Assembly (NCBI RefSeq): GCF_964204645.1
Contig: NC_134030.1
Span: forward strand, 1,471,355-1,535,354
Source: Tubulanus polymorphus
Taxonomy: Eukaryota; Animalia; Nemertea
Length of the DNA stretch: 64,000 nucleotides
Direction: 5' to 3'
Positions within the stretch are counted from its first letter, which is position 1. The number at the start of each line of letters is the position of its first letter. This document shows positions 23,711-58,650 of this stretch, piece after piece. The position numbers were made by a program, and so were the translations under genes. The notes beneath the pieces were generated by a model. The model made no database searches, was not told where the DNA came from, and saw nothing but the letters and a program-made list of their open reading frames with translations.

Positions 23711-23781
23711 TATCTAGAAAAACAAGTAAAAATATTAAATCATTTGAAAATATATCAGTCAGTCTTATTCTGGTTCAGTGA

Positions 23782-25510: not shown

Positions 25511-25519
25511 CTTTGTTTG

Positions 25520-25722: not shown

Positions 25723-26164
25723 ATTTTTTTCTATAGGAATTCAAGAACAAAGTAGTCGCATGTAGGTAGACACATTCATGAATCACTCAGTGTCTTCCTG
25801 TCCCACCATAACTTCCTTGATCCTCATTACTCGGATTTATTCTCTGAACCACTTTTCCATGTTTGTTGTGGTTTGTTTGTTTTGATTTGCTGGTGGTTTA
25901 AGCATGCATGTAGAGGGAGCTCTATCAATCCAGGAACAGTCAGCTCACAAGCAGCCCCTGCCCAAAAGGTTTTGACATTATATTTTCAAAAGCTCTAGTT
26001 GTTCTGTAGAACCGAGAGCGGAGCTCTGACTTGTTCCCCTCACTGCTGAGGTCTACTTTCTCTGATTCGCTGATTGGCTTCTCTTTGGTACATTTTAGAT
26101 GATCAAAAACTAGAAACTGTCATGCGTTTATTCATTTTGGTATATGTTAAAATTCTTTTACAGT

Positions 26165-33039: not shown

Positions 33040-34520
33040 TTCAATCGCTGTTTTTGGGTAAGATCGCAGTTTTTGTGTTAGATCGCAGTTTTTAGGTTAG
33101 ATCACCGTTTTGAGGTTAGATCACCGTTTTTGGTTAGATTGCTGTTATGTGTTAGATCACTTTTTGTGTTAGATCACAGTTTTTGTGTTAGATCGCTGTT
33201 TTTGGGTTAGATCGCTGTTTTGTGTTAGATCGCTGTTTTAGGTTAGATCGCAGTTTTTAGGTTACATTGCAGTATTTTGGTTAGACCGCAGTTTTTTGTT
33301 AGATCGCAGTTTTTAAGTTAGATCGCTGTTTTGGGTTAGATCACAGTTTTTGTGTTAGATGGCTGTTTTAGGTTAGATCGCAGTTTTTAAGTTAGATCGC
33401 AGTTTTTGTGTTAGATCGCTCTTTTAGGTTAGATCGCAGTTTTTAAGTTAGATCGCTGTTTTCGGTTAGATCACAGTTTTTGTGTTAGATCGCTGTTTTT
33501 AGGTTAGATCGCAGTTTTTAGGTTACATTGCAGTATTTGGGTTAGACCGCAGTTTTTTTGTTAGATCGCAGTTTTTTTGTTAGATTGCTGTTTTGGGTTA
33601 GATCACAGCTTTTGTGTTAGATCACAGTTTTTGGGTTAGATCGCTGTTTTTGGGTTAGATCGCTGTTTTGGGTTAGATCACAGTTTTTGGGTTAGATCGC
33701 TGTTTTTGGGTTAGATCGCTGTTTTTGGGTTAAATTGCTGTTTTTGTGTTGGATCATTGTTTTTTGTGTTAGATCATTGTTTTTGGGTTAGATCGATGTT
33801 TTTGTGTTAGATCGCATTTTTGTGTTAGATCACTGGTTTTTTGTTAGATTGCAGTTTTTAGGTTAGATCGCTGTTTTTGAGTTAGATCGCTGTTTTGTGT
33901 TAGATCGCCGTTTTGTGTTAGATCGCCGTTTTTAGGTTAGATTGCTGTTTTTAGGTTAGATCGCTGTTTTTAGGTTATATCGCAGTTTTTGTGTTAGATC
34001 ACTGTTTTTGTGTTAGATAGCAGTTTTTAGGTTAGATCGCTGTTTTTGAGTTAAATCGCCTTTTTGGGTTAGATCACAGTTTTTGTGTTAGATCACAGCT
34101 TTTAGGTTAGATTGCTGTTTTTAGGTTAGATCCCTTTTTTTTCTTAGATCGCAGTATTTAGGTTAGATCGCTTTTTTTGGATTAGATCGCTGTTTTTGGG
34201 TTAGATCGCAGTTATTGTGTTAGATCGCAGTTTTTTGTTAGATCGCTGTTTTTGGGTTAGACCGCAGTGTTTAGGTTAGATTGCAGTTTTTGGGTTAGAA
34301 CACTGTTTTTCTGTTAGATCGCATTTTTTTGTTAGATCGCTGTTTTAGGTTGGATCGCTGTTTTAGGTTAGATCGCAGTTTTTTGTTAGGTCGCTGTTTT
34401 TGGGTTAGAAAGCTGTTTTTGTGTTAGATTGGTGTTTTTAGGTTAGATCGCTATTTTTGTGTAAGATCGCTGTTTTTGGGTTAGATCGCTGTTTTTGGGT
34501 TAGATCGCTGTCTTTGTGTT
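33040..34520. repeat. 19-20-bp minisatellite (about 75 copies)
   Basis: Consensus gttagatcgc(a/t)gtttttg(g/t), strongly T/G-skewed. Confidence 0.95.
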
Positions 34521-34569: not shown

Positions 34570-35243
34570 CATATAGAGAATTAGTGGATGTGGTGTCCCT
34601 GGACCCCTACATGCACCATATAGAGAATTAGTGGATGTGGTGTCCCTGGACCCCTACATGCACCATATAGAGAATTAGTGGATGTGGTGTCCCTGGACCC
34701 CTACATGCACCATATAGAGAATTAGTGGATGTGGTGTCCCTGGACCCCTACATGCATCATATAGAGAATTAGTGGATGTGGTGTCCCTGGACCCCTACAT
34801 GCATCATATAGAGAATTAGTGGATGTGGTGTCCCTGGACCCCTACATGTACCATATAGAGAATTAGTGGATGTGGTGTCCCTGGACCCCTACATGCACCA
34901 TATAGAGAATTAGTGGATGTGGTGTCCCTGGACCCCTACATGCACCATATAGAGAATTAGTGGATGTGGTGTCCCTGGACCCCTACATGCACCATATAGA
35001 GAATTAGTGGATGTGGTGTCCCTGGACCCCTACATGCATCATATAGAGAATTAGTGGATGTGGTGTCCCTGGACCCCTACATGCACCATATAGAGAATTA
35101 GTGGATGTGGTGTCCCTGGACCCCTACATGCACCATATAGAGAATTAGTGGATGTGGTGTCCCTGGACCCCTACATGCACCATATAGAGAATTAGTGGAT
35201 GTGGTGTCCCTGGACCCCTACATGCACCATATAGAGAATTAGT
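34570..35243. repeat. 47-bp satellite array 4 (about 14 copies, opposite orientation)
   Basis: Reverse complement of the unit; ends about 70 bp before the exon-1 acceptor. Confidence 0.97.
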
Positions 35244-35314
35244 TCACTGAACCAGAATAAGACTGACTGATATATTTTCAAATGATTTAATATTTTTACT
35301 TGTTTTTCTAGAAG

Positions 35315-35377
35315 ATGCCTAAAGCAACAAGAAAAACACGGGGCGCGGGCCCCTCACATTCAAGCCCGTATAATAAA
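35315..35377 (+). CDS. Coding exon 1: MPKATRKTRGAGPSHSSPYNK
   Basis: Acceptor ttttctag at 35311 just before the ATG, donor gtaagt at 35378; the peptide is conserved in about 15 other copies in the window. Confidence 0.9.
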
Positions 35378-36553
35378 GTAAGTACAAATTTACTGCTTCC
35401 ATGCTTATTTATTCATCCCATACTTAGTATTTTGTACCCCTGGGTCCAGTTTCACAAAAAGGATAAACGCCTTAATCGATTTAAGATAAACTGAATTAAT
35501 GAAGAAATTAAATCGATTTAAGAGTTAAACCTGTTTGTGAAACTAGGCCCTGAATTGCATCTAGAATGAAAAAAAAGAAAAAAAAATATTGAAAATAACG
35601 TTGGTGAAATATTTCTGGATCTTTCTGGATTTCTGCTCAATGCATCGTTTAGTAAAATATCGATATTCTCTAAAAGTAAAGATATAAGAATAAAAATATT
35701 GTATTGAATCGTGATTAGTTACTGTATGCGCTGCTAGTTGTTGCCCAACCCATAGCCTCATTTCTCTCCATTCTAAATTTGCATTGTTTAACATTGTCTG
35801 GTCGCTATGGAAACTATTTATTTAAGTTTCTTTGTGGTATCCATGGCAACAGTAACGTTTAGGTAGTGGCACCAATTATGGGTCCCAACGTTCCCATGGC
35901 GATACATGAGAACATTTATCCTATTTTTGACCTACATGACGTAAGATGGTAGTGAGTCGATGACGTCATTTTCGTCTCACCACTAATGAAAAAAAAAATT
36001 AAATGAAAAAAAAGGAAGAAATCGTTAGAATTACGTTTATGAAATTTTTCTGGATCGGCTAAATGTATTGTTCCATTAAATATCGACATTCTCTAAAATT
36101 ATAGGCATCAATATCAAAATGATGATACAGCAGACTCCGCTTAACTCTGTTCTATTTGGACCATTAATTAACCGAATACCAACTTTTTAAAATTTTAGGA
36201 TTTTTACGTTAAGGATCAGAAAATGTGTATGCAATTTCAACCGGGTACCGAGTAGGGTGGCCGAGTCTACTGTAGTCTGCTGCCCCCTCGAATCCATTAC
36301 CTTATCATCTCTCAATTTGCATTGTTTGACCTCGTCTGGTTGCTATGGAAACTATTTAGTTATATCAGGAACGGTTTTTTCGAGGTAACCAGTGGCAACA
36401 TTTAACAGGCGTGTCCGTCCTAGAGATAAACTGTCTGATTTCACAGCCACATCCGTCCTGGAGATAAACTGTTAGATAAACTCTGATTTCGCGTCTGTCC
36501 TATTTCTTGTCATTGTATGAATATGTTTTCTCTTTTATAGGGTACAGCGCAGC

Positions 36554-36596
<43 letters not shown>

Positions 36597-39500
36597 GCAA
36601 CAAAAATTTGATATTTCGATGTCCGGAATAGACGTAAGTTATCGTAAACGCCTGTTTGAAGTCATCATTCTTGAGCTTGAAACCGAAATTTATATTATAG
36701 AATATTAAACCCTGCTTCTGCTACTGACAGGTAATGTCCGTCATACATTACTGCATCGTCAAATCTATACCAGGGTGCACCCAGGCAGATCGTTCGCATC
36801 ATCACATGCAAAGGGCTGATTATTTTGGAACCCAGTTTTTATCAGCTGGAACATTCTGCACATTCGACCATATTGATTGATAGCCCGTTATAGACGAGTG
36901 GAGAAAAACTGAAAAACCAGTTCGGAAAAACTTCGATTGATTTCACTCACATTTACAGAAATTTGGTCCGACCCCAAAACCATTTACTTACACTATACAA
37001 ATCAGATCAGGTTTTTAACATTGTCTTTGATTGTATTTTCAGTTTTTACCCACAACGCCGCCCAGTGGTGTTTCGACGCCGGTAAGTGATAACTATTTTC
37101 TAATAAATCACGCTTATTTCAATTTGTAATTTGAAAATAGAGGGTAGTAGCTGTTATGTATAAATTATGCTAATTAGGAATAAATTCAAATTCGATTAAG
37201 TCTCATCATCGTAGAAGTCATATATTAATGATGCTATCTCTAAAGTTGTCATTTAAATTAAGTGTTATATTTACTACTTCATTTGCTTCATGACCCAAAA
37301 ACCTCTACTATATAACTACTGGTTTTGTTCTAATCTTGGAGAATTTGCTGCAAAATTTACTTATCATTTGTTAAACAGTTTTTATTGAAAACCTGAATCA
37401 GTGATACATGCATTCATGAATATCCATCTAATATTTTGTTTTATTTTATCTTTACAGGATTTATCACCGATACAGCACGTGGACGTAAGAGATTAAACAT
37501 TGATCTTGAATTTTAAGTTCAAACTAATTTATTTTTTATCTCACTCGGGACTATAGTTATTGCGTTCACTTTGCGTCCAGTTGTCTCGGGTAGTTTTTGA
37601 TTTATCGTGTTGATAATTGGTTTATATACTCAAACTCAAAATATCGGCGCAATTGGAATTAAGATGGCGCACTTGTATGTCCATTTTTTTCCCCGGCAAA
37701 ATTAGCACTTTAGCAGATTTTAAGGATCAATTCTGTTGTTATATTACATTGAAATCAGAGTTTAATATATATCGGTATAGAGCAGATTTTTGCTCTAGTT
37801 ATAAATAAAGTTATAAATAATCTCATGACATGTTCTGTATATGTGTAGTGAGTTTCAATGTCTTTGGTTCCTTTTAAACCAGGGGGAGTTAAATTTGAAA
37901 ATGTCAGATCGTCGAGCATTTCAGACCGCATCCAAAGTGGGTCCCTGCACCCCTAGTTATACCGTTAATATTTTAATAATACATTAATATTTTTATTTGA
38001 TAGAATATATTGATATACCATACATTGATATCGGTCTTGTAATTGGATCAACAACCATGAGATCAAAACACAGCAAATATGAACCTGCTGTGAATCAATA
38101 GATTTGTGATAAATGTAATGAAATTGTTATTTTTCATATTGACTTTTTGAGTTAAGGGTCTGTTGTATAAGAGTCTTTGGTCTCGCGTGTCAATGTATGA
38201 TATCAATCTGTTGTATTTCCTCGTTCCAATGTTTAAAAGGTGTTCGTCACCTTATATTAATAAACTACTTTAACCGTTAGATGGCGCCATAAGTGTGATA
38301 TTTGATTTATGGGATACCCGCAAAACCAGCTATTCCACCAGATGGCGCAACGAGTAGTAGGTCGTTCGTTGTCAAAATTAGTTCATTTTCGATGAACTTT
38401 GAACTGGTTTGAAGAAGAAATACTTTCATTCTTCTACTCTGACATCGGTTTAGTTTTCATTAATAATTGATTCATTTAAGAGAACAATTCATTCAGATTT
38501 AATTGAAATGTACAAGAAAATCGAACGCAGACGACCAACTATTTACTAGCGACACCTGGTGGATCCTCGCCTGCCATAAGTGGAATCCTCGATTGCTACA
38601 GTAAGACTGCGGGTAACCCATTGTTTGGCGTGTGAAGTAAAGTAAAGTTAGAAAACGGATGTTTAACTTTGTTGTGAAACGAAAGCGTTTTGGAGATTTT
38701 TAAACCAATCAAATCAATATTTTGATATTACGCTTGAAACCCTTCCCACTCATATTCTACTTACTAAGTATATATTCTTGTTTCCGTGGAAATCATGGTG
38801 AGTGGCGCCATCTATACAGTGGAGTTAGCTTTATAAATCGAGCTTGCTTCGACAAGTGGCTCCATCTATTCCCTAATACTGAAGCGAGGTAACCAGCAGC
38901 GCCCTCATATACAGGAAATGAACGCCTATCAAGTTTAACAATGCACGGTGTATTGACCACAGCGACCGGTGATAATTATATCAATGTTGATTAGCTATTG
39001 CCATAGACAGGTCCGTAGCGTTTGACTGGACCAGAACGGGGCCCCCTAACCAAAACAAATTTTGAAAACGTGCCCAGATAAATTGCCTCTGGGAGATTGA
39101 TTTAACGAGGTTTTGATTAAATGAACAAATTTTAATATTTGTAAGTTTAACATTTCTGTTTTTAATTTTTCTTTGCGAGGAACTGAATTTTCGAACCCCC
39201 CCGAACCGCCTCAAGCTATGTTCCTGATATAGTGCTAGCTATACCTGAATACTTTTCTCTTATTGAAATTGTCTAAAAAACCAGCACCTTGAACTAATGA
39301 ACGTCATAATGAAAATGTTTAAAAATTCAACCGTTAATGAATTTGACTAATGTATTTTTTTTATTTTCATTTCTAGCATCAGTTTGCCTCAGAGGCAAGG
39401 TCGCCGTCGCTTAATGTAAGTATCAGTGACGCCCTCAATCTCACATGCCTCACTTCCCTCCTAATGTAACCATTTTTATGAAATTCCTCAAGAAAATATA

Positions 39501-42500
39501 TACTAGTAATCTTAGAATACACGTTTTTGTACCCAGACCCCTTCATTCTACTGAACTACCGTGTAATAAGTGCCTGTTGTGTTCATTTTCTGTTGCATTG
39601 ATTTATATATTATTTCTATTTACAGTTGTCAAACAACAGCAGCAGCAGCAACAGCAGCAGCAGCGCACCCCTCCCGCCGGAGACGCCTCCCGACTTGCAA
39701 GCAAGAAGTAAGTTCAGTCTTCAAATACAATTTCAACGCATTCAATTTTTTGTATGGCGTTAAAACGGTTAAAGTTGTGACTAGTTTTCATAACTCCGTG
39801 ACGTCATATTTCCATCGAGTACCGGACCCTTTCCTATGTTTTTTGCCAATTTGGATTGAATGATCGCCAGCGGTTTTTCTATACGACCCGGCTCTGCTGT
39901 ATTGCATTTAGCCATCCTTTTTCTTGGCGTTTTTATAAGAAGGTGTTTGATTTTGTCTCTAAGGGATTTAGGAATTTAAGAGACACTTGTACTTTCTATG
40001 CAGTGAGTTTGTTCTGTTTTTGTTCCCTCGTGAATTTTATTTTTGTTTGAATCAAATCAAATCAGTACATCTTTCTTGAATTGCGTGTATGTTATAATAT
40101 TATGTAAGTTATAATGTTATCAAATATCTGTTATATTTAAACCGAATATTTAATTGTTGTATTTTGAATGCGATAATGCCGCTCCCTGCTAAAGTCCAGC
40201 GTCGTCATCGTGAGGGATGCGGTCATCTGTTCGGGCCCTGATTACGTTCTGTGTTCATCCTGTTGGGCTACATCGGGCGTTATATGAGTTAATCCTTCCT
40301 CGACTTGCGGATTGTGGTCGGAAGATCTATGGGTTCGGGCCGATAAGTCCCGGAAACAGAAAGTACAGTTTCTGCCGATGTGCCCATTGATGTCTCTATT
40401 TCAGAACATCACAGCGGTCGCCGGCTGTACAAGCACGGTCGGCTTCCCAACTCCTTTCTCTGAGGAGGATCGCTGGTTCTCTAGTAACGGTCAGTCACCA
40501 GTCAATCAACGGTTCAGCTGGTTCAGTTTCCCAGGTATCGGCGCGCGACAGTCGGGATACCTGCACAGGAACTCAGGTCCGGTCCGGGCTACTCCGAGCA
40601 CCGGTCCGGTCCAGGCCTCACTGGGTAATGAACATCTGGTCCGGTCCGGGCGGCTTCGAGCACCGGTCCGGTCCAGGCATCACCAGATACTGAACATCCT
40701 GTCCAGTCAGCTCCGTGCACCGGTCCGGTCCAGGCATCACCGGGTACTGAACATCTGGTCCGGTAGCTTCGAGAACTGGTCCGGTCCAGGCATCACCGGA
40801 TACTGAACATCCTGTCCGGTCAGCTCCGTGCACCGGTCCGGTCCAGGCATCACCGGATACTGAACATCTGGTCCGGTCAGCTTTGAGAACCGGTCCAGGC
40901 ATCACTGGGTACTGAACATCTGGTCCGGTAGCTTCGAGAACTGGTCCGGTCCAGGCATCACTGGGTACTGAACATCTGGTCCGGTAGCTTCGAGAACTGG
41001 CCTGGTCCAGGCATCACCGGGTACTGAACATCTGGTCCGGTCAGCTCTGTGCACCGGTCCGGTCCAGGCATCACCAGTTACTGGTCCGGTCCGGGCAGCT
41101 TTGAGCACCAGTCCATTCCAGGCATCACTGAGTACTGAACATCCAGTCTGGTCCGGTCCAGGCAACACCGGGTACTGATCATCCAGTCCGGTCCGGTCCA
41201 GGCATCACTGGGACTGAACATCCAGTCTGGTCCGGTCCAGGCATCACCGGGTACTGATCATCCAGTCCGGTCCGGTCCAGGCATCACCGGGTACTGAACA
41301 TCCAGTCTGGTCCGGTCCAGGCATCACCGGGTACTGAACATCCAGTCTGGTCCGGTCCAGGCATCACCAGTTACTGAACATCCAGTCCGGTCCGGTCCAG
41401 GCATCACCGGGTTCTGATCATCCAGTCCGGTCCGGTCCAGGCATCACCGGGTACTGAACATCCAGTCCGGTCCGGTCCAGGCATCACTGGGTACTGAACA
41501 TCCAGTCCGGTCCGGTCCAGGCATCACTGGGTACTGAACATCCAGTCTGGTCCGGTCCAGGCATCACCGGGTACTGAACATCCGGTCTGGTCCGGTCCAG
41601 GCATCACTGGGTACTGAACATCCGGTCCGGTCCGGTCCAGGCATCACCGGGTACTGAACATCCAGTCCCGTTTAGTCCAGGCATCACCGGGTACTGAACA
41701 GGGTTCGTCGCGGTGCTTGAAAAGCTTGAAATGGCTTGAATTTGAAAAATACTACTCAAGCGCTTGAAAACAGCTTGAAAATAGATCGAAAGCTTGAAAT
41801 AATTATTTTTGACTTGAAATAAAAAGTTATGGCTTGAAATGCTTGATTATCACAAATTTTCTTCTTCGCGAATTTTTTTCGATGAAATCGCAGACAGAAT
41901 ATGTTCTTGAGTTGTTTCTACGCGTGCGTCATGTTTTAGGCATCAATAAAGAAATTAATTGAATTGTATTGAATCGCTATGAGACTCTTGTGGTGAAACT
42001 CTACGGTGTCTGGAGACATGAACATACAGGGAAATTTCAGTCATGCATGTTATCGAGCATTGATGTAAAATGGCATTGAAATCCCACACCAGGAGTGAGA
42101 GCCATGTTGAAGGCACAGCGACCTAGTCAAAGTCATTGAACATTACAAATTTCGTATTAGGCCATACAAAAATCAAGGTCTGTTTGCCGTCATCCGACCG
42201 ACCCGACTTCAAAGGTACCCAGTGGAAACTTTTTTCTTGGATTCATCGAAATAAATTGTATTTTTGATACAAATGGCCGACCCACTGCCGATGTATGAGC
42301 TATGTATGTTTGAAGTTAAGTGTGCATCATGTGAAAACATGCCTCGACTATAGTTGAAGTTTTCCAGGAAACTGGCAGTGTTCCAATAAGCTGCCATTCA
42401 TTCTAAAGCTGGTAATGTTATAGCGTGCATATATTCAATCTACTGTTTCATTTTGAACGCAGATTTCGGATGTTGTTTCCGCTAAAAGTGGTGATGATAA

Positions 42501-45500
42501 ATTTGTTGTTTTTTTTGCCCCAAAATTTTGCACAAAAAAAATGATGCTACCTTCCTACTGACTTATCCCAAAAATAGTAGGTGTAACGGCAAAACAGACA
42601 ATTAATTTGGGATGGCCAAATATCCAAATCTTGATTGATATGAATATTTAAGCTAGGAAATGCTGAAAATCATTGTGATGAACAGGTTTCATCTCTAACA
42701 GAATCGTATCAACTCGGAGGTTCCACTGGAATCAAAATTTTACCTCTTTTTTAACATTTTTATACGAACCTGTTCAAAATAGGCAAATTGGCTGCGACTA
42801 ACGAAAATTGCTTCCAACGTGCCTTAAAAAATAGCTTGAAAATGGTATAAATCTAGCTTGAAATGGCTTGAAAATACCTGAGCTTGAGACAATGAACCCT
42901 GCTGAACATCTGGTCCGGTCAGCTTCCAGCACCGGTCCGGTCCAGGCATCACCGGTTACTGAACATCCGGTCCGGTCAGCTTCCAGCACCGGTCCGGTCC
43001 AGGCATCACCGGTTACTGGTCCGGTCCGGGCAGCTTTGAGCACCGGTCCGGTCCAGGCATCACTGAGTACTGAACATCCAGTCCGGTCCGGTCAGCTCCG
43101 AGCACCGGTTCAGGCATCACCAGGTACTGAACATCTGGTCTGGTCCGGGCGGCCTGGCATCAATGTTTCGAATTTAAAACATAGTTATCATGGTTCTAGG
43201 TTTGGTAGAGGGCGCTCTTCTACCAGATGCAGGAGCGAGGTCACCTTCACGGAGATCGAGATCGAGGGATTATGATTGATTCTGTAGGAACCATCATCAT
43301 TCATCAGTTCAGGTCGAGGGACCGTTTAGGAAGTTCACGTCTTTCACGTCGAGGGACCGTTTAGGAAGTTCACATCTTTCACGTCGAGGGACCGTTTAGG
43401 AAGTTCACGTCTTTGACGTCGAGGGACCGTTTAGGAAGTTCACGTCTTTCACGTCGAGGGACCATTTAGGAAGTTCACGTCTTTCACGTCAGGGACCGTT
43501 AAGGAAGTCGTCACAATAATCAGGATTTCCGCGATTTCGAAAGTCAGATTTTAAACTTGTTATTGTCATTGTAAGCTACCGCAGTTACAGGTAAGCCTAT
43601 TCTTGATTGCCCGAGACAGGCGTGCAGATATTGTTCCCGACTTTTGGTTGATTTTCTTGTGACTTGTTTGTTTTAGGGGTGAGATGGATGAGCCTTATTG
43701 TTTTTTGACATATATAGGTCATCCAAGATGGCCGCCACAGCCATTACAATGTGTAAAATAGCCATTTTGAAGCTTGTGACAACTCTACAATCTACAGTTT
43801 CAGACCAATTTACCAATTACTTATTCTGTGGTTTCATAATGGTAGGAGAATGAGCCTTATTGTTTTTGACATATATAGGTCATCCAAGATGGCCGCCACA
43901 GCCATTTCAATGTGTGAAATAGCCATTTTGAAGCTTGTTACCGCTCTACGGACTTGAGTTTTAAGCTTAAGACTTAAGATGGCCACCACAGTTATATCAA
44001 TGTGTTAAATCTTATCCGATTTGGAGCTTGTTACTGCTCTAAGATGTAGAGGTTTAGAGGTTTATAATTTTATTCATACTTGTACTGTGGTTTATTTATG
44101 GTGGTCAGAGGATGAGACCTATTACAATTTGCATTCTCTACTTGACTCACTGGTCAAGGGTTAATATCTAGTTTGATAAATGTGGAGCATGTCGGTGAAT
44201 CACCCCCCCCCCCCCCCCCCGGACTCTGATCTCAATGTCTGATGTCAATCGTCAGCAGTTTCAATGGAATGGGCTCGATTAGGTGTGGAACAAGTGGAAT
44301 CCTCGATTGCCACAGTCGAACCTAGAGTATTAAGAGCTCAATTAGGTTCTTCTTTGCGTCTCTTCTCCGGTTGGAGTGCTCCAGTTTCCACCGAATGGAG
44401 GAAGATTAGAGATGTGCAGATTCAAGTCCACCATGCGGACTCCGGCTCCGGCAGCTCAAGGTTCAGCTCCGGCTCCGGCAGCTCAAGGTTCAGCTCCGGC
44501 TCCGGCAGCTCAAGGTTCAGCCCGAACTCACACAATGCCATCTCAAGCATCTACTAATGCTGGTTGGAGAACAAGTGCACAGCTCCAACATTCTCGTGCC
44601 CCTTCTGGTCAGAATAATTCTAGTTCATATCGGGGAATGCTCCTAAAAGGAGCTCTTCCTCTCGGAGAAACTCAAAATGAATGCTCGGGGCCAGTGAGAG
44701 GTTGTCTATAACGAGCAGCCACCTACTGATCCGGCGTTCCCGGGTCGTATCACGGCGGCTACTGTCTTCAATTCTGAACACCTCCCGACATGCGCCCGAA
44801 AGCAGGTCACGAGACACTAATCTCGTCAGCTCTCAAAGATCTGGCCAAAAAGAGAGCAATAGAACCAGTACGGGACGAAGCCACATCCGGCTGGTTTTCA
44901 TGAATATTTATGCTCCTTAAGACCACAGGGCCTCGATGGACTGTCATTCCTCGAGCGGCACCTGGATATCCCGAGGCTTCCGATGACTAAAACAGGGAGG
45001 TAATTCAAGGTCTCCGCCGAGGTTAATGGGCGGCTTCATTGGACCTGAAAGATGTCAGGTTCCTATTCACCCGAAATCTCATCAATTTTACAGAATGAAG
45101 TGGAAACTCCGCCAGTTCCAGTTCAGGTCTCTTCCAGTCGGCCTCAGTACAGCCCACGCCCTGGGTATTTACCAGCTTGGGTCAAGTCCAGAAGGTACAC
45201 TACACTCCAGGGCTGGGTTTCATAGATATGGAAGAAAAATAATTCCAGGGAACATTTTGAAATTTGTCAGTTATAACCATGGTTTCTCATTGTTAGTATG
45301 GTGATTGAGGATTTATCCCTTTGGATAACTTTGATACTCAGTCTATGAAACCGGGTCCTGGAGTATTTGTCTGTTGGTTTACCTCGACGACTGGTTACTA
45401 GTACCAAACTCGACTATAGAATGTCAGGAGGCGGTGACCGCTGTCGACCGCTGTCGTAGACTTAGTTCACCAGTTCCGCGTAAACTAAGTAAAATCTCAC

Positions 45501-48500
45501 TTGATGCCGTCCCAACAGTTCACATCTCCGGATCAGCACGGTCTTTCCGTCCATGGCTCGAGTAGCCAAACTTCAAGAAGCGTAGTTACCACAAACGAGA
45601 GGACAGCTAGTTATCGGTGACGCCTGTGGCTAAATGCAATACCGCACTGCCAGGGGTCGTATCTCTGGCTATCTACACATTCAGAGAATATTAACTAAAA
45701 CCATAGGAAAGGGTCAAGCACTACTCCGAAAAAAACTAATTTTATTTCCAAAAAATTATGATATTATATGGATTGCATGCTGTGTGGAAGAAGTTTTCAA
45801 AATTATTTAGGAGCTTATTATAATTTGAATGCATGAATTGAGAGCAATTTGAAATGTGTTGATATCCGAAAGTGTTTCCATTGACTTCACTCATTCACCT
45901 GATGAAGCTTCTATACATTAGTACCCAAAGCTTGTGTGTCAAATAAACTAGTTACACGTCCTATAAAGTACTACTTGTCTCGTTATATATTCTAAACGCC
46001 AGTTAACAATTCCAGTAAGTCAGGTTTAGGGAATAGATATTTAAACCTTCAGATGATACCGATGTTATACAATTCCAGTAACTCAGGTTTAGGGAATAGA
46101 TATTTAAACCTTGAGATGATACCGATGTGATACAATTCCAGTAAGTCAGGTTTAGGGAATAGATATTTAAACCTTGAGATGAAACCGATGTGATACAATC
46201 CCAGTAAGTCAGGTTTAGGGAATAGATATTTAAACCTTGAGATGATACCGATGTTATACAATTCCAGTAAGTCAGGTTTAGGGAATAGATATTTAAACCT
46301 TGAGATGAAACCGATGTGATACAATTCCAGTAAGTCAGGTTTAGGGAATAGATATTTAAACCTTCAGATGATACCGATGTGATACAATTCCAGTAAGTCA
46401 GGTTTAGGGAATAGATATTTAAACCTTCAGATGATACCGATGTAATACAATTCCAGTAAGTCAGGTTTAGGGAATAGATATTTAAACCTTGAGATGATAC
46501 CGATGTTATACAATTCCAGTAAGTCAGGTTTAGGGAATAGATATTTAAACCTTGAGATTAAACCGATGTAATACAATTCCAGTAAGTCAGGTTTAGGGAA
46601 TAGATATTTAAACCTTCAGATGAAACCGATGTGATACAATCCCAGTAAGTCAGGTTTAGGGAATAGATATTTAAACCTTGAGATGAAACCGATGTGATAC
46701 AATTCCAGTAAGTCAGGTTTAGGGAATAGATATTTAAACCTTGAGATGATACCGATGTGATACAATTCCAGTAAGTCAGCTTTAGGGAATAGATATTTAA
46801 ACCTTCAGATGATACCGATGTAATACAATTCCAGTAAGTCAGGTTTAGGGAATAGATATTTAAACCTTCAGATGAAACCGATGTGATACAATCCCAGTAA
46901 GTCAGGTTTAGGGAATAGATATTTAAACCTTCAGATGATACCGATGTGATACAATTCCAGTAAGTCAGGTTTAGGGAATAGATATTTAAACCTTCAGATG
47001 ATACCGATGTAATACAATTCCGGTAAGTCAGGTTTAGGGAATAGATATTTAAACCTTCAGATGAAACCGATGTGATACAATTCCAGTAAGTCAGGTTTGA
47101 TATTTAAACCTTGAGATGATACCGATGTGATACAATTCCAGTAAGTCAGGTTTAGGGAATAGATATTTAAACCTTCAGATGAAACCGATGTGATACAATT
47201 CCAGTAAGTCAGGTTTAGGGAATAGATATTTAAACCTTCAGATGAAACCGATGTGATACAATTCCAGTAAGTCAGGTTTAGGGAATAGATATTTAAACCT
47301 TCAGATGATACCGATGTAATACAATTCCGGTAAGTCAGGTTTGATATTTAAACCTTGAGATGATACCGATGAATTTAGCAATTTTGAATGAATTAAACCA
47401 ATATGAGATTTCGATCCTAAGAATATTGGAAGCTTGTGTTTAACGTTACTAAATAGTAATATTATATAAAGCTAGAAGGACACGAGCGTATCCATTTTTC
47501 GCCCGATCGCGACGATTAAATTCGCCGGTGAATTTATACGCCCGATACGAGCGGGTACCGATCTATCTATAAATCGGCCGTCACGGTGATTTCGTCGCCC
47601 GCCGACATTAAACATGTTCGATATTTACGCCGGTGTTCGGGTCACTTGTTAATTCGCTCGGCTTGTCGGCAAGCTTAAAAAGATTTAGAAAAAACTATAA
47701 ATTCTCATTCCTGAATGAACTGGATTCATCTGGGTTCAGTTTCATGAGACACAGTTCAAACTGCTCTTGAATTTGAGTTTGTAATTAATGTATGTGATTA
47801 TAATGAATTGTATTTTTGTTTTACAGCTTTGGCATTTCGGTTAAGTCGTGCGTTCCGGCGGGAGGAGTTCGTCAGAATATTTCTACCGGAGTGTAAGTAG
47901 TTTAACTATTTTCATACAATATCATTTAGTGTGACGTGTGTTACTGATTCAGGCACGGATCCAGGAATGTTTCCAAGACGGGGTTCATAAAAATGCTGAC
48001 TAAAATCTCTAATAATAGCCGGGGCCTATACGGCATATTTTTTGGCCAAACATAAGGCCTTTTTTTAATAGCATGGTTTGGTTGCTCCCAAAATTTGAAG
48101 AAACATAAAATAAAAAAGAATTAGAAAAAAAATTTTTTATTCCTGTCTGTGAAACAAATTCAGTGAAAAACCGAGCAAAAAAGATTTTTCACCTCGGCCG
48201 AATGAGAATCCTGGATTGAACGATGAAACAATTGAAAAACGCGAGGTTCTTTTTTGATCGCAGTGTGCAGAATTCAAACTTTCCAAGATTCATTTGTTCG
48301 GACATATGTATATTGCCCTATTGACAGTTCCCTCTTCCTTCTAAAAGTGATTTTATCTCACTGAGGGAATTTTTAAAAAATTTTCTCTGAAATGATATGG
48401 TAGCGTTTTTTTTTTTTGCTTTAAAAATTTTTTGGTAGCCGATCAGCGGGGTCACGACCCCTGAAACCCTCCCTGGATCCGCGCCTATGATATCTCCTCA

Positions 48501-51431
48501 AAATCTAATAAAAACTTTCAATGAATTAATGCTGTAATGACGATATGTAGCCATCTGTCTATTTGAATGCATTTGCAAAAAGACAAAAAGAAATAGTAGC
48601 AGAATTTTGGCTAAAAGTTTAGAATACCCAAATTCAACATTGCTTGCAGCAGACGGAATATCCGCCATTTTGGTTAACAGGGGATTCCCCCCTCCGGTAC
48701 TTCCCATGATCAATAGTGTCTATGACGCGTTGCGTACGGAATGCCATGGAATTCCCTCACATGATTTATGATAATAATGTTTACTTGCATTCTGATTGGT
48801 TAAAATCGCGTGTAGTTTGAACGTAGGCAATGTTTACATTTGTAACGTCACCGGCGAGTCGCTGACATTAACGTAGTCATTGAGTTAACATTATCTTGCA
48901 CTGAATGGTGATATCAATCGCATTCATTTTATAAATATTTTGAATATGAATTTGTTTTTATATATCAACTGCGAGTAACAGTGTTACGCTATTGAGTCTT
49001 AAGAGACAGCCTTTATGGACCTTATTGGTTGTTATAACTCACAAGCTGACTGAGTTAGCATTCTGGATCCGTCAGATTAGTTACTTCTAGAAAATATGTT
49101 AGTCACATTTTCTGACTATATTCTGGAAAACAGTGGAAGCTTGTATCCACCCTAGATTAGAACCAATCAGAATAGAACCAATCAGAATACACTATTTTAC
49201 AGAAAATATATTTATGACAATTGCGTAAGGTTTTAGTAAAATAGTGTTTTTTCTCGAGTAGTTGCCGAAGAAGCATAAAAATTTGATTCAATTTCATTCA
49301 GATTTAAACAAACAAATCGAATTTCATTTCATTCAGCGCAAACTTCAAATCTAATTAAAATTTTGTTCAGTATGAATAAGTTGCAAATCATTGAGAGGAA
49401 AAAATAATTAATTGTGTTACTTAAAAAAATCACAATTGTACTGTGTTTATCAAAACAGGAGACCACAGGACCTTTGGTCCTCTAGTATTCTTTTCCTAGT
49501 TATTCCAAAAACACTAAAACAGTCCAATCAGCGATCGCTGCCAGACCAACACGATTACATTGAAATCAAACTTAAGTAACATCAGGCGCCCCCTGTTGGA
49601 ATAATATTCATAGCCGTAGCATCGAAACCATTCGACTTGTTGTTTAATGTATTTCTCTCTATTTTTATTTTACAGTGATGAACATTTTAGAAGAATGTCC
49701 GTTTGGGGACTTGGTGGGGGAATTCAAAAGAAACTTGGTTCCCGATAGGATACCACCACCGGTTAATCCTATGTCGCCCGCTGCTGCCCCTCCCCCACGT
49801 CCATTAAATTCGCCTCAGCAGCGGCCTGTCAGACAGCCGCCCCCGGCCGCCACTCGTTCGTCAGACAGAGTCCGGGGACGGCTGTTTGAAGGAGATCTGA
49901 CGGAGGTAAGAATCTTTATTTGTTTTCATATTTTATTCAGGATATCAGTTGAAGTTCAGCAAATAAATTACCAGACCTGTAAACAGAAGAGTAGTTATAA
50001 ATTTCCATTTGCGGGTAAAACCCCATAGTCGAAAACCTTCGGTTATTGATCTATATCTGCTTAAGACCAATGGTTGTACACACGAGTGCGAAAACTTATC
50101 GCTCAAACTTTGATTGTATCCATGGTAACGCGTACAGTATACTATGCGTGACTACCGTTTCCTATCACTGGAATACAATACTGTTTTTGACCATGAGCGC
50201 CATCTGCGGCGGTCATAACGGACTGACTGGTGATTGGCTGAAATGCTCGTCTACCGTGGTGACGATTATTCGGTGTTACACGTGCAGCAGACACGTCTCT
50301 GAATATCTAACATTTGATTGTTGTAACTCATCGGGAAAAATATGTTTATGAGTCGATTTTTTGTCGAAATTTTGTTCGGCAGAAAATTGGCTGCGTACGT
50401 CAAGAAGGCGGCTGATATTTGTATCGTGTGACCCCTCGTCCCGGTAATATGCCGACCCACGTACACCTGAGACCAGTTGCATATTCAGAGCTTAGAATTA
50501 AGACCGTTTTAAGACCAACTTAGTTCTATAGCCAATCTAATAACTTAAGACCAGTCTTTAGATTTAAGACCACTTTTGGACGTAAGTCTTGACCATGGAA
50601 TCGGCCCCAGATGCTTATTCCGCTGTATTGGATGCTGACGTGCTCGTGTCTTCCAGCAATGTTGTTATTCACCAAAAATATCATGTTTTGTTCGAATAAC
50701 ACAATTCATCTGAGTCTGGGTTTAACGGATGACACGTTCAAACAGAACTACGAAATCAATATCAGAAGTCCTTTTATATTGAAACGGTCCCAGAAGTCCC
50801 TGTTATAATGGGTACTTTTTCAAAAAAAGTAACGAGAACTCCGATGGCTTTCCGTATCGGTAAAAACTAACTATTTCTATGAGCGTCACTCGTAGATTTA
50901 CCGAAACGCCACCTTGTGACACGATATCCTAACTACGTATAGGTGTTTTATTTGCTGAATCGCTGGTTTCTCATTCTCATTTTTTATACTTGTGTTTAAT
51001 TTTATACTAAACAAATTTTTCACTTTTTCTCTTTACAGACACGACCACCGCCAAAAAAAACTAGAACAAAAAGGAAAAGAAAAGTTGCGGTCGTCGTGGC
51101 TCCGCAGGGAGGAGGAGCAAGAGTGGTCCCGGCGGATGGTGCGGCTGAAGAAGGTAATCGGGAGGAAGGGGAGGGGATAAATAGGAAGCGGCCGAGGAGG
51201 GATGGTGGTGGGGCTGGGGATGGTGCGGGTCCTGCTCCTCCTGCTCCTCCATCCGTATCTCGGGCGGTCACTCGTTCACTCGCCAAAAAGCTGGCGAGTG
51301 AACGAGTGGCCCGAGAGGTAGAGGTGGTGGCCCGACATACGGATGGAATGTGGGAGGAGCGGCTTCGTTCGGGGACAATTCCGGATTTGTTAACTGATTT
51401 AAAAAATATTCTTTCAGTGAAGGGATATTAG
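35315..51431 (+). CDS. Intact spliced gene, 9 coding exons, 343-aa protein of unknown family (basic N-terminus, Q18, S/TP-rich, short predicted helical core, Pro-rich linker, basic NLS, Gly-rich C-terminal region)
   Basis: join(35315-35377,36541-36633,37043-37081,37458-37484,39377-39415,39626-39707,47827-47892,49676-49905,51039-51431) = 1032 nt, no internal stop. All introns are GTAAG...YAG with pyrimidine tracts; phases 0,0,0,0,0,1,1,0 are consistent. Junctions 1/2, 2/3 and 6/7 occur already fused in paralogous copies at 23551-23710, 21468-21594 and 18595-18670. Confidence 0.85.
35440..35553. mobile_element. Short palindromic MITE in intron 1
   Basis: ctgggtccagtttcacaaa / tttgtgaaactaggccctg with internal inverted aatcgatt repeats. 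Confidence 0.7.
36541..36633 (+). CDS. Coding exon 2: GTA-Q18-KFDISMSGID
   Basis: tcttttatag acceptor, gtaagt donor, in-frame (CAA)n; homologous QQQ..FDVSISGIE in the copy at 23.6 kb. Confidence 0.88.
37043..37081 (+). CDS. Coding exon 3: FLPTTPPSGVSTP
   Basis: ttttcag / gtaagt, 39 nt; paralog FLPKTPPSGVSTP with the same donor at 23551. Confidence 0.88.
37458..37484 (+). CDS. Coding exon 4 (27-nt microexon): DLSPIQHVD
   Basis: tttacag / gtaaga; paralog VFSPIQHNS after the same acceptor at about 23330 (-). Confidence 0.8.
38274..38910. promoter_or_regulatory. Cluster of CTCF-like motifs in intron 4
   Basis: CCACCAGATGGCGC 38335-38348, GCGACACCTGGTGG 38549-38562, weaker matches at about 38274, 38803, 38858 and 38897. 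Confidence 0.55.
39377..39415 (+). CDS. Coding exon 5: HQFASEARSPSLN
   Basis: Long pyrimidine tract plus ttctag, donor gtaagt, 39 nt phase 0-0; no paralogous copy seen, and skipping it would keep the frame. Confidence 0.65.
39626..39707 (+). CDS. Coding exon 6: LSNNSSSSNSSSSAPLPPETPPDLQAR
   Basis: tttacag / gtaagt, 82 nt phase 0-1; its 3' end (CAA GCA xGA A) is found fused to exon 7 at 18670-18660 (-). Confidence 0.8.
41699..42901. mobile_element. Non-autonomous DNA transposon with 5-bp TSD (hAT5-like)
   Basis: Termini CAGGGTTC / GAACCCTG, TSD CTGAA (41694-41698 and 42902-42906), subterminal CTTGAAA repeats; removing it restores the host repeat unit. Confidence 0.85.
42160..42617. mobile_element. 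Nested MITE (Harbinger- or Kolobok-like ends)
   Basis: Imperfect TIR of about 32 bp: ggccatacaaaaatcaaggtctgtttgccgt / acggcaaaacagacaattaatttgggatggcc. Confidence 0.6.
43313..43505. repeat. 35-bp tandem repeat (about 5.5 copies)
   Basis: gtcgagggaccgtttaggaagttcacgtctttcac. Confidence 0.95.
43570..44170. mobile_element. Helentron-associated (HINE-like) element with central repeats of about 165 bp
   Basis: Repeats containing gagccttattgtttttgacatatataggtcatccaagatggccgccacagccatt at about 43690 and 43852, partial at 43975. Confidence 0.4.
46006..47372. repeat. 63-bp satellite (about 21 copies)
   Basis: acaattccagtaagtcaggtttagggaatagatatttaaaccttcagatgataccgatgtgat. Confidence 0.97.
47827..47892 (+). 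CDS. Coding exon 7: TLAFRLSRAFRREEFVRIFLPE
   Basis: ttttacag / gtaagt, 66 nt phase 1-1; paralog TLAFRIRRAFRREEFVRLFLPK with many synonymous changes. Confidence 0.88.
47951..48486. mobile_element. MITE in intron 7 (Harbinger-like TIR)
   Basis: TIR aggcacggatccagg / cctggatccgcgcct (14/15); absent at the homologous site of the paralog intron (about 18530-18545). Confidence 0.8.
49676..49905 (+). CDS. Coding exon 8: LMNILEECPFGDLVGEFKRNLVPDRIPPP...RGRLFEGDLTE
   Basis: ttttacag / gtaaga, 230 nt phase 1-0; matches ORF 49675..50028; two paralogous copies share the acceptor. Confidence 0.9.
51039..51431 (+). CDS. Terminal coding exon 9: TRPPPKKTRTKRKRKV...LKNILSVKGY-stop
   Basis: ctttacag acceptor, in frame with ORF 51096..51431; three frameshifted copies on -. 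Confidence 0.9.
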   Translation, partial: TRPPPKKTRTKRKRKVAVVVAPQGGGARVVPADGAAEEGNREEGEGINRKRPRRDGGGAGDGAGPAPPAPPSVSRAVTRSLAKKLASERVAREVEVVARHTDGMWEERLRSGTIPDLLTDLKNILSVKGY

Positions 51432-51889
51432 GTGCCTTGAACGCATGAGTCGTTCATGCGCGCCTAATATGCCTTCACTGAAAAAAAATCAACTATAACA
51501 TGTACACATATTTTTTGATTTAATTTTAGTCCAATTCCACAATTATTTCGGCTTACAATAGTGTCTTCAATTCTTTAAAGCCCAAAGCACCTTTTTGACT
51601 CAACATCCAGTATGAAGGTGGCCGGGAATCGGGCCTGTTTTCTTCCATTTTTGTATCCCGCCCAGCATACTGGTTGTTGACTCGAAAAGGTGCTCGCTCT
51701 GGGAGCTTATCAAAGGCAGGTGATGGGAAAGGTGCCATCACACACTCTCCTTTGATAAGTTTCCTAGAGTGTCACGGGCTTTAACGGGTTGAATTCACTA
51801 TAATACCAATTTTCCAAAATCAATTTAATTTCTTTCAGGCCATTCTTTTTCCATGTTTTTCTGGTACATGTTATGGTTGATTTCCATTT

Positions 51890-55434: not shown

Positions 55435-57085
55435 GAATTGTTCATACAACTGTCAACATGGAGTTCATCTCACAAGCAAATTAGGTAATTATCTTATGAA
55501 ATTGTATGAATTGCCAATTTAACATTTTTGCATTTCAAGTAGGTGTAATTGAATGTTTGTCAACCTTACTCTTATAAAACTGTGTTAACCGTTGAACAGG
55601 ATTCTAAGACTGTGCAGAAAACCCGTTATCGCTGCTTTGCAGCTATAATTATCTGATAAATTAGTATGGAATGCCAATTTTACATTTTTGCATTTAAGTT
55701 TAAGTGAGTTTAAAATCACGTTTCATTTGTTGTTTATTTTGTCTTTTCAGTTTTCAATTTGCCGAGATCAGTCGTCAAAAACTGTTACAACGGAAACTAA
55801 GATAACAAAGACTTGATTTGGCAAAGATTGAAGAAATCCTGCGAAAAGATTATTCATGAATTGTTCATACAACTGTCAACATGGAGTTCATCTCACAAGC
55901 AAATTAGGTAATTATCTTATGATTTTGTATGAAATGCTAATTTTTACTCGTTAATTTTTTACAAATAAGTTGACTTTGAAATCTTTATTAATTTCTTGTT
56001 TATTTTGTTTTTTCAGTTTTCAATTTGCCGAGATCAGTCATCAAAAACTGTTACAACGGAAACTAAGATAACAAAGACTTGATTTGGCAAAGATTGAAGA
56101 AATCCTGCGAAAAGCTTATTCATGAATTGTTCATACAACTGTCAACATGGAGTTCATCTCACAAGCAAATTAGGTAGTTATCTTAGGATTTTGTATGAAA
56201 TGCTAATTTTTACTCGTTAATTTTTTACAAATAAGTTGACTTTGAAATCTTTATTAATTTCTTGTTTATTTTGTTTTTTCAGTTTTCAATTTGCCGAGAT
56301 CAGTCATAAAAAAACTGTTACAACGGAAACTAAGATAACAAAGACTTGATTTGGCAAAGATTGAAGAAATCCTGCGAAGAGATTATTCAAGAATTGTTCA
56401 TACAACTGTCAACATGGAGTTCATCTCACAAGCAAATTAGGTAATTATCTTATGGTTTTGTATGAAATGCTAATTTTACATTTTTGCATTTAAGTTTAAA
56501 TGAGTTTAAAATCACGTTTCATTTGCTGTTTATTTTGTCTTTTCAGTTTTCAATTTGCCGAGATCAATCGTCAGAAAACTGTTTCAACGGAAACTAAGAT
56601 AACAAAGACTTGATTTGGCAAAGATTGAAGAAATCCTGAGAAGAGATTATTCATGAATCATATAACTGTCAACATGGAGTTCATCTCACGAGCAAATTAG
56701 GTAATTATCTTATGATTTGTATGAAATGCTAATTTTTACATTTAAGTTTAAATGAGTTTAAAATCACGTTTCATTTGTTGTTTATTTTGTCTTTTCAGTT
56801 TTCAATTTGCCGAGATCAGTCGTCAGAAAACTGTTACAATGGAAACTAAGATAACAAAGACTTGATTTCGGCAAAGATTGAAGAAATCCTGAGAAGAGAT
56901 TATTCATGAATTGTTCATACAACTGTCAACATGGAGTTCATCTCACAAGCAAATTAGGTAATTATCTTATGATTTTGTATGAAATGCTAAATTTTACTCG
57001 TTATTTTTTTAACTAATAAGTTGACTTTGAAATCTTTATTTATTTCTTGTTTATTTTGTCTTTTCAGTTTTGAATTTGCCGAGAT
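55435..57085 (+). repeat. Tandem array of about 265 bp of exon+intron-like units (about 6 copies)
   Basis: ttttcag then ttttcaatttgccgagatc...gcaaattag then gtaatt; units start at about 55751, 56016, 56283, 56547, 56799 and 57068. Confidence 0.9.
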
Positions 57086-57109
57086 TCACATGTAGCAGAT
57101 ATAATGGAA

Positions 57110-57510
57110 TTAAGTATTGAGAACCGCAACTTAACAATAAACCGGATCAACTTAATATAGTGCTGAGGACCAAAAATAAAGGATAAACCCGACCAGTGTA
57201 ATTCAGTGTCGAGAACCGCAGTTAAACGATGAACCCGACCAGTGTAATTCAGTGTCGAGAACCGCAGTTAAACGATGAACCCGACCAGTGTAATTCAGTG
57301 TCCAGAGCCGCAGTTAAACAATGAACCGGACCAGTGTAATTCAGTGTCGAGAACCGCAATTAAACGATGAACCGGACCAGTGTAATTAAGTGTCGAGAAC
57401 CACAATTAAACGATAAACCGGACCAGTGTAATTCAGTGTCGAGAACCGTAATTAAACGATGAACCGGCCCAGTGTAATTCAGTTTCGCAATAACCGCAAT
57501 AAAACGATAA
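57110..57510. repeat. 46-bp tandem repeat (about 8 copies)
   Basis: gaccagtgtaattcagtgtcgagaaccgcagttaaacgatgaacc. Confidence 0.92.
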
Positions 57511-57679
57511 TCTGGAGTTGTAATAGTGTTGTGTATTTGCGTAGTGGATCAAGTGGAAGGATTTTAAGTGTATTTGGTGACTTTAATTCGTTCGCATCCA
57601 ACAGAATCAACAAAGACATTACAAAAAACGACAAAAAATGATTGAATGTAAATGCATTGAATTTAGGTTTGATGATCAA

Positions 57680-58650
57680 GATAATCACTGATCAAGATTG
57701 ACAGTTATAATCCATAATTGTTGAACTTGATCAGAGATTTTCAAGATCGATTTTAAGGTGATTCAGAAGTTTAAATCTGATGTTTTAATCTCTGGGACTC
57801 AGATATTAAATCAATAGATTTTTACTGCTGAATGATCTTCATGTACAGATGAGCTACAATTGTTCCTAGTGTGTTCTGTTAAGACTGATTAAAGGGTGGA
57901 AAAACTTGACTCAAATTCAAATTGAGTCGAGTTTTTCCAAGATAATCTCTGATCAAGATCAGCAGTTACCGGTATAATCCATAATTGTTGAACTTGATTG
58001 GTGATTTTCAAGATCTGTTTTAAGGTGATTCACAAGTTTAAATCTGATGTTTAAATCTCTGGGTTCCAGATATTAAATCAATAGATTTTTACTGCTGAAT
58101 GACCTTCGTGTTCAGATAAGCTACAATTGTTCCTAGTGTGTTCTGTTAAGGAAGGGTGGAAAAACTTGACCCAAATTCAAATTGAGTCGAGTTTTTCCAA
58201 GATAATCTCTGATCAAGATCGGCAGTTATAATCCATAATTGTTGAACTTGATTGGAGATTTTCGAGAACTGTTTTTAAGGTGATTCAGAAGTGTGAATCT
58301 GATGTTTTAATCTCTGGGTTTCAGAGATTAAATCAATAGGTTTTAACTTCTGAATCACTTCGGGTTTAGGTAAGTTAAAGTGTTTCCTATTGTAATCTGT
58401 TAAACTGATTAAAGGGTGGAAAAACTTGATTCAAATTAATAATCTGAATCAAGTTTTCCAATGATAATCCGCGATCAAGTTCGGCAGTTATAATTCATAA
58501 CTGTTGAACTCAATTCACAATTAAATGAACTTTTTTAAGGTGATTCAGAAGTATAAATCTGATGTTTTAATCTCTGGGTTTCAGAGATTAAATCAATAGG
58601 CTTTACTTCTGAATCACTGTTAGGTTTTGATAAGTTGTAAGTTGTTCCTA
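57680..58650. repeat. Tandem repeat of about 260 bp (about 3.7 copies)
   Basis: gataatc..tgatcaag..cagttataatccataattgttgaacttg at about 57680, 57941, 58201 and 58463. Confidence 0.9.

Follow-up and report, generated by a model that had tools for sequence, protein, structure and literature searches.

Macrosatellites such as D4Z4/DUX4 are arrays that carry one gene per unit. The ampliconic gene families of mammalian sex chromosomes are multi-copy, with copies that are at least 97% identical and mostly testis-expressed (PMC13616518), and SPANX proteins are small unfolded nuclear proteins of sperm (PMC1831492). In Drosophila simulans, Dox drivers are found together with hairpin-RNA suppressors (PMC10292708), and the micro-exon genes (MEGs) of Schistosoma combine symmetric exons of 3–81 bp with secreted products (bioRxiv 10.1101/2023.06.21.545858). 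Here we analyse a gene from the nemertean Tubulanus polymorphus that shares some features with each of these systems. The gene occupies positions 35315–51431 on the plus strand of a 64,000-nucleotide stretch (the window), which corresponds to positions 1471355–1535354 of contig NC_134030.1, called C6 here, of assembly GCF_964204645.1. An earlier note on this DNA had proposed one hidden gene; it is in fact one copy among at least 34, and it sits amid decayed inverted copies. A literature search on T. polymorphus returned nothing on this nine-exon gene. We consider that it is probably one intact member of an orphan coding family that was amplified recently, is maintained by selection and has no detectable relatives outside the genome. 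The parts of this interpretation with direct support are the exon structure, the copy number, the purifying selection on the reading frame and the lack of known families.

Like the ampliconic families and SPANX, the locus presents dozens of copies that are 97–100% identical, large units, and a lineage-restricted product that looks disordered and nuclear. Unlike them, it shows no sequence similarity to these families, forms arrays close to three contig ends instead of occupying a known sex chromosome, and carries a gene with nine exons that include micro-exons. The tandem units near chromosome ends, the intact frame in each unit and the sharing of the array by different ends resemble D4Z4/DUX4, whereas the unit here is ten times larger and holds a spliced nine-exon gene that encodes no homeobox or other known domain. 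As with Dox, a young, amplified, basic, nuclear-type family is found by satellites with inverted, partly processed copies nearby; however, there is no homology, and the protein is not protamine-derived. Several very short symmetric exons, long introns, an orphan product and a gene that is hard for gene finders to recover are all reminiscent of Schistosoma MEGs, but exons of that type make up four of the nine, the nuclear-looking product has no signal peptide, and there is no sequence similarity. Assignment to the Schistosoma type was rejected, as the three symmetric exons of 81 bp or less (39, 27 and 39 nt) together with the 93-nt exon 2 account for 198 of the 1032 coding nucleotides.

A nine-exon gene with one open frame

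The exon chain was re-derived from the plus-strand sequence by locating the quoted peptides in the plus-strand frames, reading the flanking DNA and scanning for the small exons that were missing. Nine exons, E1 to E9, were recovered, with a total of 1032 nt including the stop codon, or 343 codons:

E1, 35315–35377 (+): 63 nt, 21 codons (MPKA..SPYNK), phase 0, donor gtaagt
E2, 36541–36633 (+): 93 nt, phase 0-0 (symmetric), encoding a run of 18 Q
E3, 37043–37081 (+): 39-nt micro-exon (FLPTTPPSGVSTP), phase 0-0
E4, 37458–37484 (+): 27-nt micro-exon (DLSPIQHVD), phase 0-0
E5, 39377–39415 (+): 39-nt micro-exon (HQFASEARSPSLN), phase 0-0
E6, 39626–39707 (+): 82 nt, poly-Ser/Asn followed by PLPPETPPDLQAR, ending in phase 1 on A
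E7, 47827–47892 (+): 66 nt, first half of an amphipathic helix segment (LAFRLSRAFRREEF...)
E8, 49676–49905 (+): 230 nt, completing the helix segment (second half) and adding a Pro-rich linker and a conserved RVRGRLFEGDLTE motif
E9, 51039–51431 (+): 393 nt including the stop, with KKTRTKRKRKV, an acidic/Gly stretch, RKRPRR and a predicted four-helix end of ~60 residues

The window is AT-rich (~38% G+C) and the introns are of the spliceosomal type. All internal acceptors consist of a pyrimidine tract followed by AG, and all donors begin with GT, most of them reading gtaagt. Two codons are split by introns, A|CT (T) at the E6/E7 junction and T|TG (L) at the E7/E8 junction, in agreement with the earlier note. 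The claim that nine exons of 27–393 nt, with canonical sites and matching phases, join into one open frame was reproduced exactly from the sequence, and the motifs quoted in support of it were all recovered, namely the MPKA..SPY start, the 18 Q residues of E2, RGRLF, the PPPKKTRTKRKRK cluster and RKRPRR. Use of the 82-nt exon as the fifth exon was dropped after a scan for the next phase-1 exon gave nothing convincing; a phase-0 scan yielded the 39-nt exon at 39377–39415, which brings the coding total to exactly 1032 nt. A pyrimidine tract with an AG ends 3 nt upstream of the ATG in E1. Judged by its sequence, this AG could be the acceptor for an upstream exon or a trans-spliced leader, or it could be part of a short 5′ untranslated region. 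The nine-exon chain is thus confirmed at the sequence level, and its intact state in tandem copies and paralogues is more than chance. ORF-based annotation overlooks micro-exon genes in this genome.

Three arrays of nearly identical copies

A six-frame search with E9 was conducted over the assembly that contains the window (268 Mb, 77 contigs). Of its 114 matches, 34 span all 130 residues free of stops at 87–100% identity, and these full-length copies fall into three groups: 18 on C6 at 0.65–1.75 Mb of this 23.0-Mb contig, 10 on C3 at 0.42–1.33 Mb, and 6 on C8 at 15.1–16.3 Mb of 16.7 Mb. Copy numbers and spacing obtained with E8, with the DNA of E2–E4 and with the DNA of E1 agree with those from E9. 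Thirty of the 34 copies are 97–100% identical in protein, and the E2–E4 DNA is 97–100% identical in the 18 C6 copies; identity in both sets therefore reaches the 97% at which copies are regarded as ampliconic (PMC13616518).

Genes on C6 are spaced 30–36 kb apart, or ~60 kb where an inverted, decayed block separates them; the first 35 kb of the window hold such a block. The three arrays sit ~0.4–1.75 Mb from the ends of C6, C3 and C8. Arrays of TTAGGG were detected at or near contig ends in the assembly, with C6, C3 and C8 not among the matches listed, which suggests that the contigs are chromosome-scale and hence that the three arrays lie near chromosome ends. Together they span ~3 Mb of the 268-Mb genome. 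If expressed, the copies would constitute an unannotated orphan family whose gene bodies (~16 kb × 34) come to ~0.5 Mb, and they would provide a case of gene amplification near chromosome ends in a non-model animal that is neither an arthropod nor a vertebrate.

Individual copies were compared in a set of 11 from C6 (the window gene plus ten that were fetched) and four paralogues from C8. All nine exons are present in order, with AG and GT kept, in 10 of the 10 further C6 copies. Exon lengths vary in frame among these copies, such that E2 measures 84–102 nt through changes in the length of its Q run, E3 measures 39 or 45 nt, and E6 measures 76, 82, 85 or 91 nt. The sole exception to multiples of three is a 1-nt deletion in the E1 of one C6 copy, which causes a frameshift.

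Purifying selection on the reading frame

Because the C6 copies are young, the older C8 paralogues were used as the stronger test of constraint. When the most diverged C8 copies are compared across 16 kb, the main shared blocks are the 3′ half of E6, E7, E8 and E9, and E6–E9 stay open in paralogues at 8–25% nucleotide divergence. Proportions of non-synonymous (pN) and synonymous (pS) differences, and the ratio of the corresponding rates (dN/dS, or omega), were derived from Nei-Gojobori counts against the four C8 paralogues. E7 is present in three of the four, and the E9 figures cover three, the fourth having no synonymous difference in this exon:

E7: omega 0.21–0.29, pN 0.053–0.078, pS 0.22–0.29
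E8: omega 0.14–0.46, pN 0.013–0.100, pS 0.09–0.22
E9: omega 0.17–0.19, pN 0.031–0.045, pS 0.16–0.21
E9, last 80 codons: pN 0.006, pS 0.06–0.11

These dN/dS values, 0.14–0.46 against the older paralogues, indicate that the frame is under purifying selection. The C-terminal ~60 residues, encoded by the end of E9, are the most constrained part of the protein. Among the C6 copies themselves, pN/pS is 0.04–0.19 in E1, E2, E3 and E7. A picture of copies without selection is provided by the stops in the minus-strand copies, which bear TGA, TAA or TAG, whereas the 34 full-length E9 copies bear none.

The predicted protein

Composition was summed exon by exon. Lysine and arginine contribute 50 of the 343 residues (14.6%) and aspartate and glutamate 35, giving a net charge of roughly +15, and half of the residues are S, T, P, Q, G or A. 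Protamine-like proteins consist of Arg and Lys for roughly a third or more of their residues, and the content of 14.6% rules out a protamine-like sperm nuclear basic protein. Inspection of the E1 sequence (MPKATRKTRGAGPSHSSPYNK) by eye found it to be basic and without a hydrophobic stretch, indicating that a signal peptide is lacking.

Classical monopartite nuclear localization signals (NLSs) have a K-K/R-x-K/R core within an exposed basic cluster. The KKTRTKRKRKV segment at the start of E9 fits this consensus and is kept in the C8 paralogues. The earlier note had characterized the product as a mostly disordered, phospho-regulated nuclear protein. The NLS-like cluster and the low-complexity composition fit the disordered, nuclear part of this description; regulation by phosphorylation is not supported. 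The ‘numerous SP/TP sites’ on which it relied amount to eight [ST]P sites in 343 residues, compared with ~6 expected from composition, so they are not enriched and give no evidence for control by cyclin-dependent kinases (CDKs) or mitogen-activated protein kinases. CIP/KIP CDK inhibitors carry a cyclin-binding RxLF motif, and here too an R-x-L-F sequence is followed by acidic residues, but the resemblance consists of four residues. A search of E8 against Pfam (hmmscan, E ≤ 10) returned no family, and hence no CDI domain (Pfam PF02234) around the RxLF. Membership in the CIP/KIP family was therefore rejected, and the kinase and cyclin reading of the sequence has no support beyond composition-level motifs. 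The GRL[FW]EG[DE]L stretch is nevertheless kept in a distant paralogue family, described below, and so appears to be constrained for some reason.

AlphaFold applied to E9 with a small alignment of paralogues gave a predicted local distance difference test (pLDDT) score of 53, with helices only at residues 75–127, and applied to the last 64 residues it gave a pLDDT of 62 and four helices. The only parts that are likely to be folded are the amphipathic helix across the E7/E8 junction and the four-helix C terminus of ~60 residues. The protein may enter the nucleus through its KRKRK-type basic cluster, and its conserved helical ends together with the GRL[FW]EG[DE]L motif could allow it to act as a binding or adaptor protein. 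By analogy with the germline-expressed ampliconic families of other animals, amplification might serve dosage.

Relatives inside and outside the genome

Database and fold searches were run exon by exon. No exon scored above noise in Pfam, neither phmmer nor a profile search retrieved a PDB sequence, and the ESM Atlas gave no usable match. The model of the last 64 residues found nothing below E = 8 in the PDB with Foldseek. A word-index search with E8 returned none, although its length window would miss full-length proteins anyway. A phmmer search with E9 against 1.84 billion representative proteins produced zero matches at E ≤ 0.001. Exon 9 is therefore absent from every called or annotated protein of that library, which makes ‘hidden’ an apt word for the gene. 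The statement in the earlier note that no family was recognised thus holds across Pfam, PDB, the representative proteins, the ESM Atlas and Foldseek, none of which gave a significant match, and the proposed lineage-specificity is only as firm as these blank library searches.

The genome itself does contain relatives: some ten copies scattered over C11, C9 and C8, whose matches cover residues 16–76 of E8 (53%) and residues 66–130 of E9 (45%). This distant family is represented by the loci L009 (C11:2082000–2088000), L010 and L011, and its copies sit within blocks longer than 5 kb that they share, at 85–96% identity, on three contigs. The E8-like exon of L009 measures 236 nt, has the same entry phase as E8, ends at a gtaagc donor and contains RVDGRLWEGELRE, and the motif is retained in this family as GRLWEGEL. 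The helices encoded by the last exon share 40–44% identity with the E9 end, including invariant W, EE, LL.DLK and GY positions. Upstream of these helices, acidic EP repeats take the place of the basic cluster.

Inverted copies and intron 6

Decayed copies of the gene lie on the minus strand on both sides of it, and satellites adjoin or interrupt the gene:

Inverted degenerate block, 18159–27461 (−): ~11 E1-like cassettes, with E7-, E8- and E9-like pieces that contain stops
Second inverted remnant, 59357–61537 (−): an E1-like cassette (59413) with E9-like pieces (60989–61537)
47-bp satellite, 34570–35243 (+): 14.3 copies, separated from the downstream ATG by 71 nt
Intron 6, 39708–47826 (+): 8.1 kb, with a length that differs across copies

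Three E1-like cassettes in the larger inverted block retain gtaagt donors. In the inverted copy at 23710–23552, E1 abuts E2, and E2 is fused to E3 at the predicted junction, after which comes a gtaagt donor; the one at 21594 likewise has E1 abutting E2, and it retains intron 2. The exact absence of introns from these inverted paralogues provides independent support for the E1/E2 and E2/E3 junctions.

The 47-bp satellite is also located upstream of inverted E1 copies, as its reverse complement, at 19835–20109, 21666–22514, 23782–24583 and 59485–60197. Satellite and first exon recur together as if they were one module. The satellite could be a promoter or enhancer array.

Intron 6 contains GC-rich 57/40-bp satellites (40578–41700 and 42902–43145) and a 63-bp satellite (46006–47342, 21 units), and it is mainly through satellites that its length varies among copies. 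A broken open frame at 45026–45565 (+) of this intron carries a YLDDWLL motif, which by eye is reverse-transcriptase-like; the same stretch has no match in Pfam.

Exon-limited divergence among tandem copies

The exon-limited, mostly synonymous divergence of the tandem copies is a more interesting feature than the protein. It was measured in an alignment of 4.6 kb from E1 to E6 (window 35245–39860) that included 11 C6 copies (loci L017–L036), with pi denoting nucleotide diversity; values for E8 and E9 among array copies are given alongside:

Introns and flanks: pi 0.0084, 117 variable of 4275 columns
E1: pi 0.133, pS 0.35, pN/pS 0.19
E2: pi 0.044, pS 0.22, pN/pS 0.04
E3: pi 0.118, pS 0.32, pN/pS 0.12
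E5: pi 0.037, pS 0.00
E8: pS 0.013, pN/pS ~1.4 (few changes)
E9: pS 0.007, pN/pS 0.37

In the pooled exons 48 of 343 columns are variable, an excess over the introns and flanks with an odds ratio of 5.8 (Fisher P = 1e-17). The 60-nt windows with the highest divergence in the region fall on E1, then E3, then E2. E1 is the most variable exon across copies, and its variable tract begins 3 nt ahead of the ATG and extends as far as codon 18, with nearly invariant sequence on either side. The protein encoded by E3 is almost constant across copies despite the nucleotide diversity of the exon. Divergence at synonymous sites of E1 and E3 exceeds that of the neighbouring introns ~40-fold.

Some copies are mosaics. 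In one copy, the 5′ half of E1 has a single mismatch to the 59413 inverted cassette and 8 to the E1 of the window gene, and the 3′ half of the same exon is identical to the window E1. In three copies (L025/L026, L031/L032 and L035/L036) intron 7 is short, at ~200 bp compared with 1.8 kb; their E7 has in common a 3′ half with altered codons (CGT in place of AGA, for instance, both Arg), and their E8 starts with MIILQD. The linkage of the E7 3′ half, the short intron 7 and the N-terminal variant of E8 indicates mosaic ancestry, with sequence from another lineage, and the same mosaic is also present in an inverted copy (window 18642–18159).

It is rather doubtful that exons 1–3 of the array copies owe their diversity to a mechanism restricted to exons, be it repeated templated patching from the variant, partly intron-less cassettes inverted beside the genes or selection to evade small RNAs that those inverted copies would produce. 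The account that we prefer for the divergence is that the young genes of the arrays have exchanged patches with paralogous cassettes that are old and diverged, in which case the tracts of exchange would be limited to exons because only exons retain homology. Competing accounts are selection against the homogenization of exons, and selection favouring nucleotide changes that evade small RNAs. The pairing of near-identical introns with diverged, mostly synonymous exons provides a concrete test of exon-limited exchange or selection in arrays. The SPANX paper (PMC1831492) does not describe faster divergence in exons than in introns.

Alternative explanations

Several observations weigh against a selectively maintained coding family. 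The pN/pS of E8 among C6 copies is high, on very few changes, and high identity of array copies alone would hold frames open for some time. The nuclear assignment is drawn from motifs, and the distant family is acidic where the basic cluster stands here. AlphaFold confidence is low (pLDDT 53 and 62), Foldseek was blank, and exon 9 occurs in no protein of the 1.84-billion representative library. Moreover, no promoter or polyadenylation site has been established, the first plus-strand AATAAA being 627 nt past the stop. One alternative is that the locus is a recently amplified but by now silent relic, a satellite-rich segment that was copied and whose frames are open only through the youth and homogenization of the copies. 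The 97–100% identity of the copies, the setting of the gene amid satellites and decayed copies, the frameshift that already exists in one array copy and the absence of exon 9 from public-library proteins would all be expected of such a relic. We nonetheless regard it as unlikely, since dN/dS values of 0.14–0.46 against C8 paralogues, at pS up to 0.3, point to long-term constraint; E1 and E3 have kept their protein (pN/pS 0.1–0.2) at a pS of ~0.3; and 34 of 34 full-length E9 copies are free of stops, unlike the inverted copies. That a large mobile element carried the gene as a passenger or accessory is extremely improbable. The YLDDWLL motif in intron 6 and the dispersal of the distant family as blocks of more than 5 kb, with 85–96% identity on three contigs, could be taken to suggest it; however, the YLDDWLL stretch is broken and intronic, the close copies are restricted to three tandem arrays rather than dispersed, and inspection of the window revealed neither an integrase nor terminal repeats. 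Transposon origin was accordingly rejected, given that the window has no transposase ORF and that the YLDDWLL stretch lacks a Pfam match.

A different explanation, suggested by analogy with Dox and its hairpin-RNA suppressors in Drosophila simulans (PMC10292708), invokes genomic conflict, wherein the gene would encode a selfish or dosage-sensitive germline factor that is silenced by small RNAs from the adjacent inverted copies, and wherein the exon-restricted nucleotide divergence would represent escape from antisense or hairpin small RNAs. Inverted partial copies do lie 8–17 kb upstream and 8–10 kb downstream of the gene, two of them lack intron 1 or introns 1 and 2, divergence peaks within exons and is mostly synonymous with introns that differ by 0.8%, and the massive amplification has taken place next to satellites. 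Yet E8 and E9 also have inverted copies and are not hypervariable (pS 0.013 and 0.007), the inverted copies carry the same 47-bp satellite upstream and so may simply be dead genes, and the protein is not protamine-like. We therefore consider conflict an unlikely explanation. It is very unlikely, on the exon sequences, that the gene serves as an isoform cassette in which E2–E5 would be skipped or combined, as in schistosome micro-exon genes. E2–E5 (93, 39, 27 and 39 nt) are all phase 0-0, and thus any subset preserves the frame; even so, such exons represent just 198 of 1032 coding nt, the product has no signal peptide, and each gene has one copy of each exon, with no plus-strand arrays of alternatives. 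A selectively maintained, recently amplified coding family is the interpretation that we favour.

Further features of the window

One additional structured element overlaps the end of the coding region:

Hairpin, 51412–51483 (+): 72 nt, near-perfect, covering the final codons together with the stop; an A8 tract follows it

The corresponding RNA folds at −45.9 kcal/mol with z = −10.4, as computed for a 106-nt stretch (51395–51500). Scans of the window with Rfam and for tRNAs found nothing, and the hairpin thus has no Rfam match. The C8 paralogues retain it with hardly any change and the distant family lacks it; because it is nearly invariant in the former, covariation is uninformative. Further satellites flank the gene and comprise a 19/56-bp array at 33044–34520 and 266/260-bp arrays at 55725–58654.

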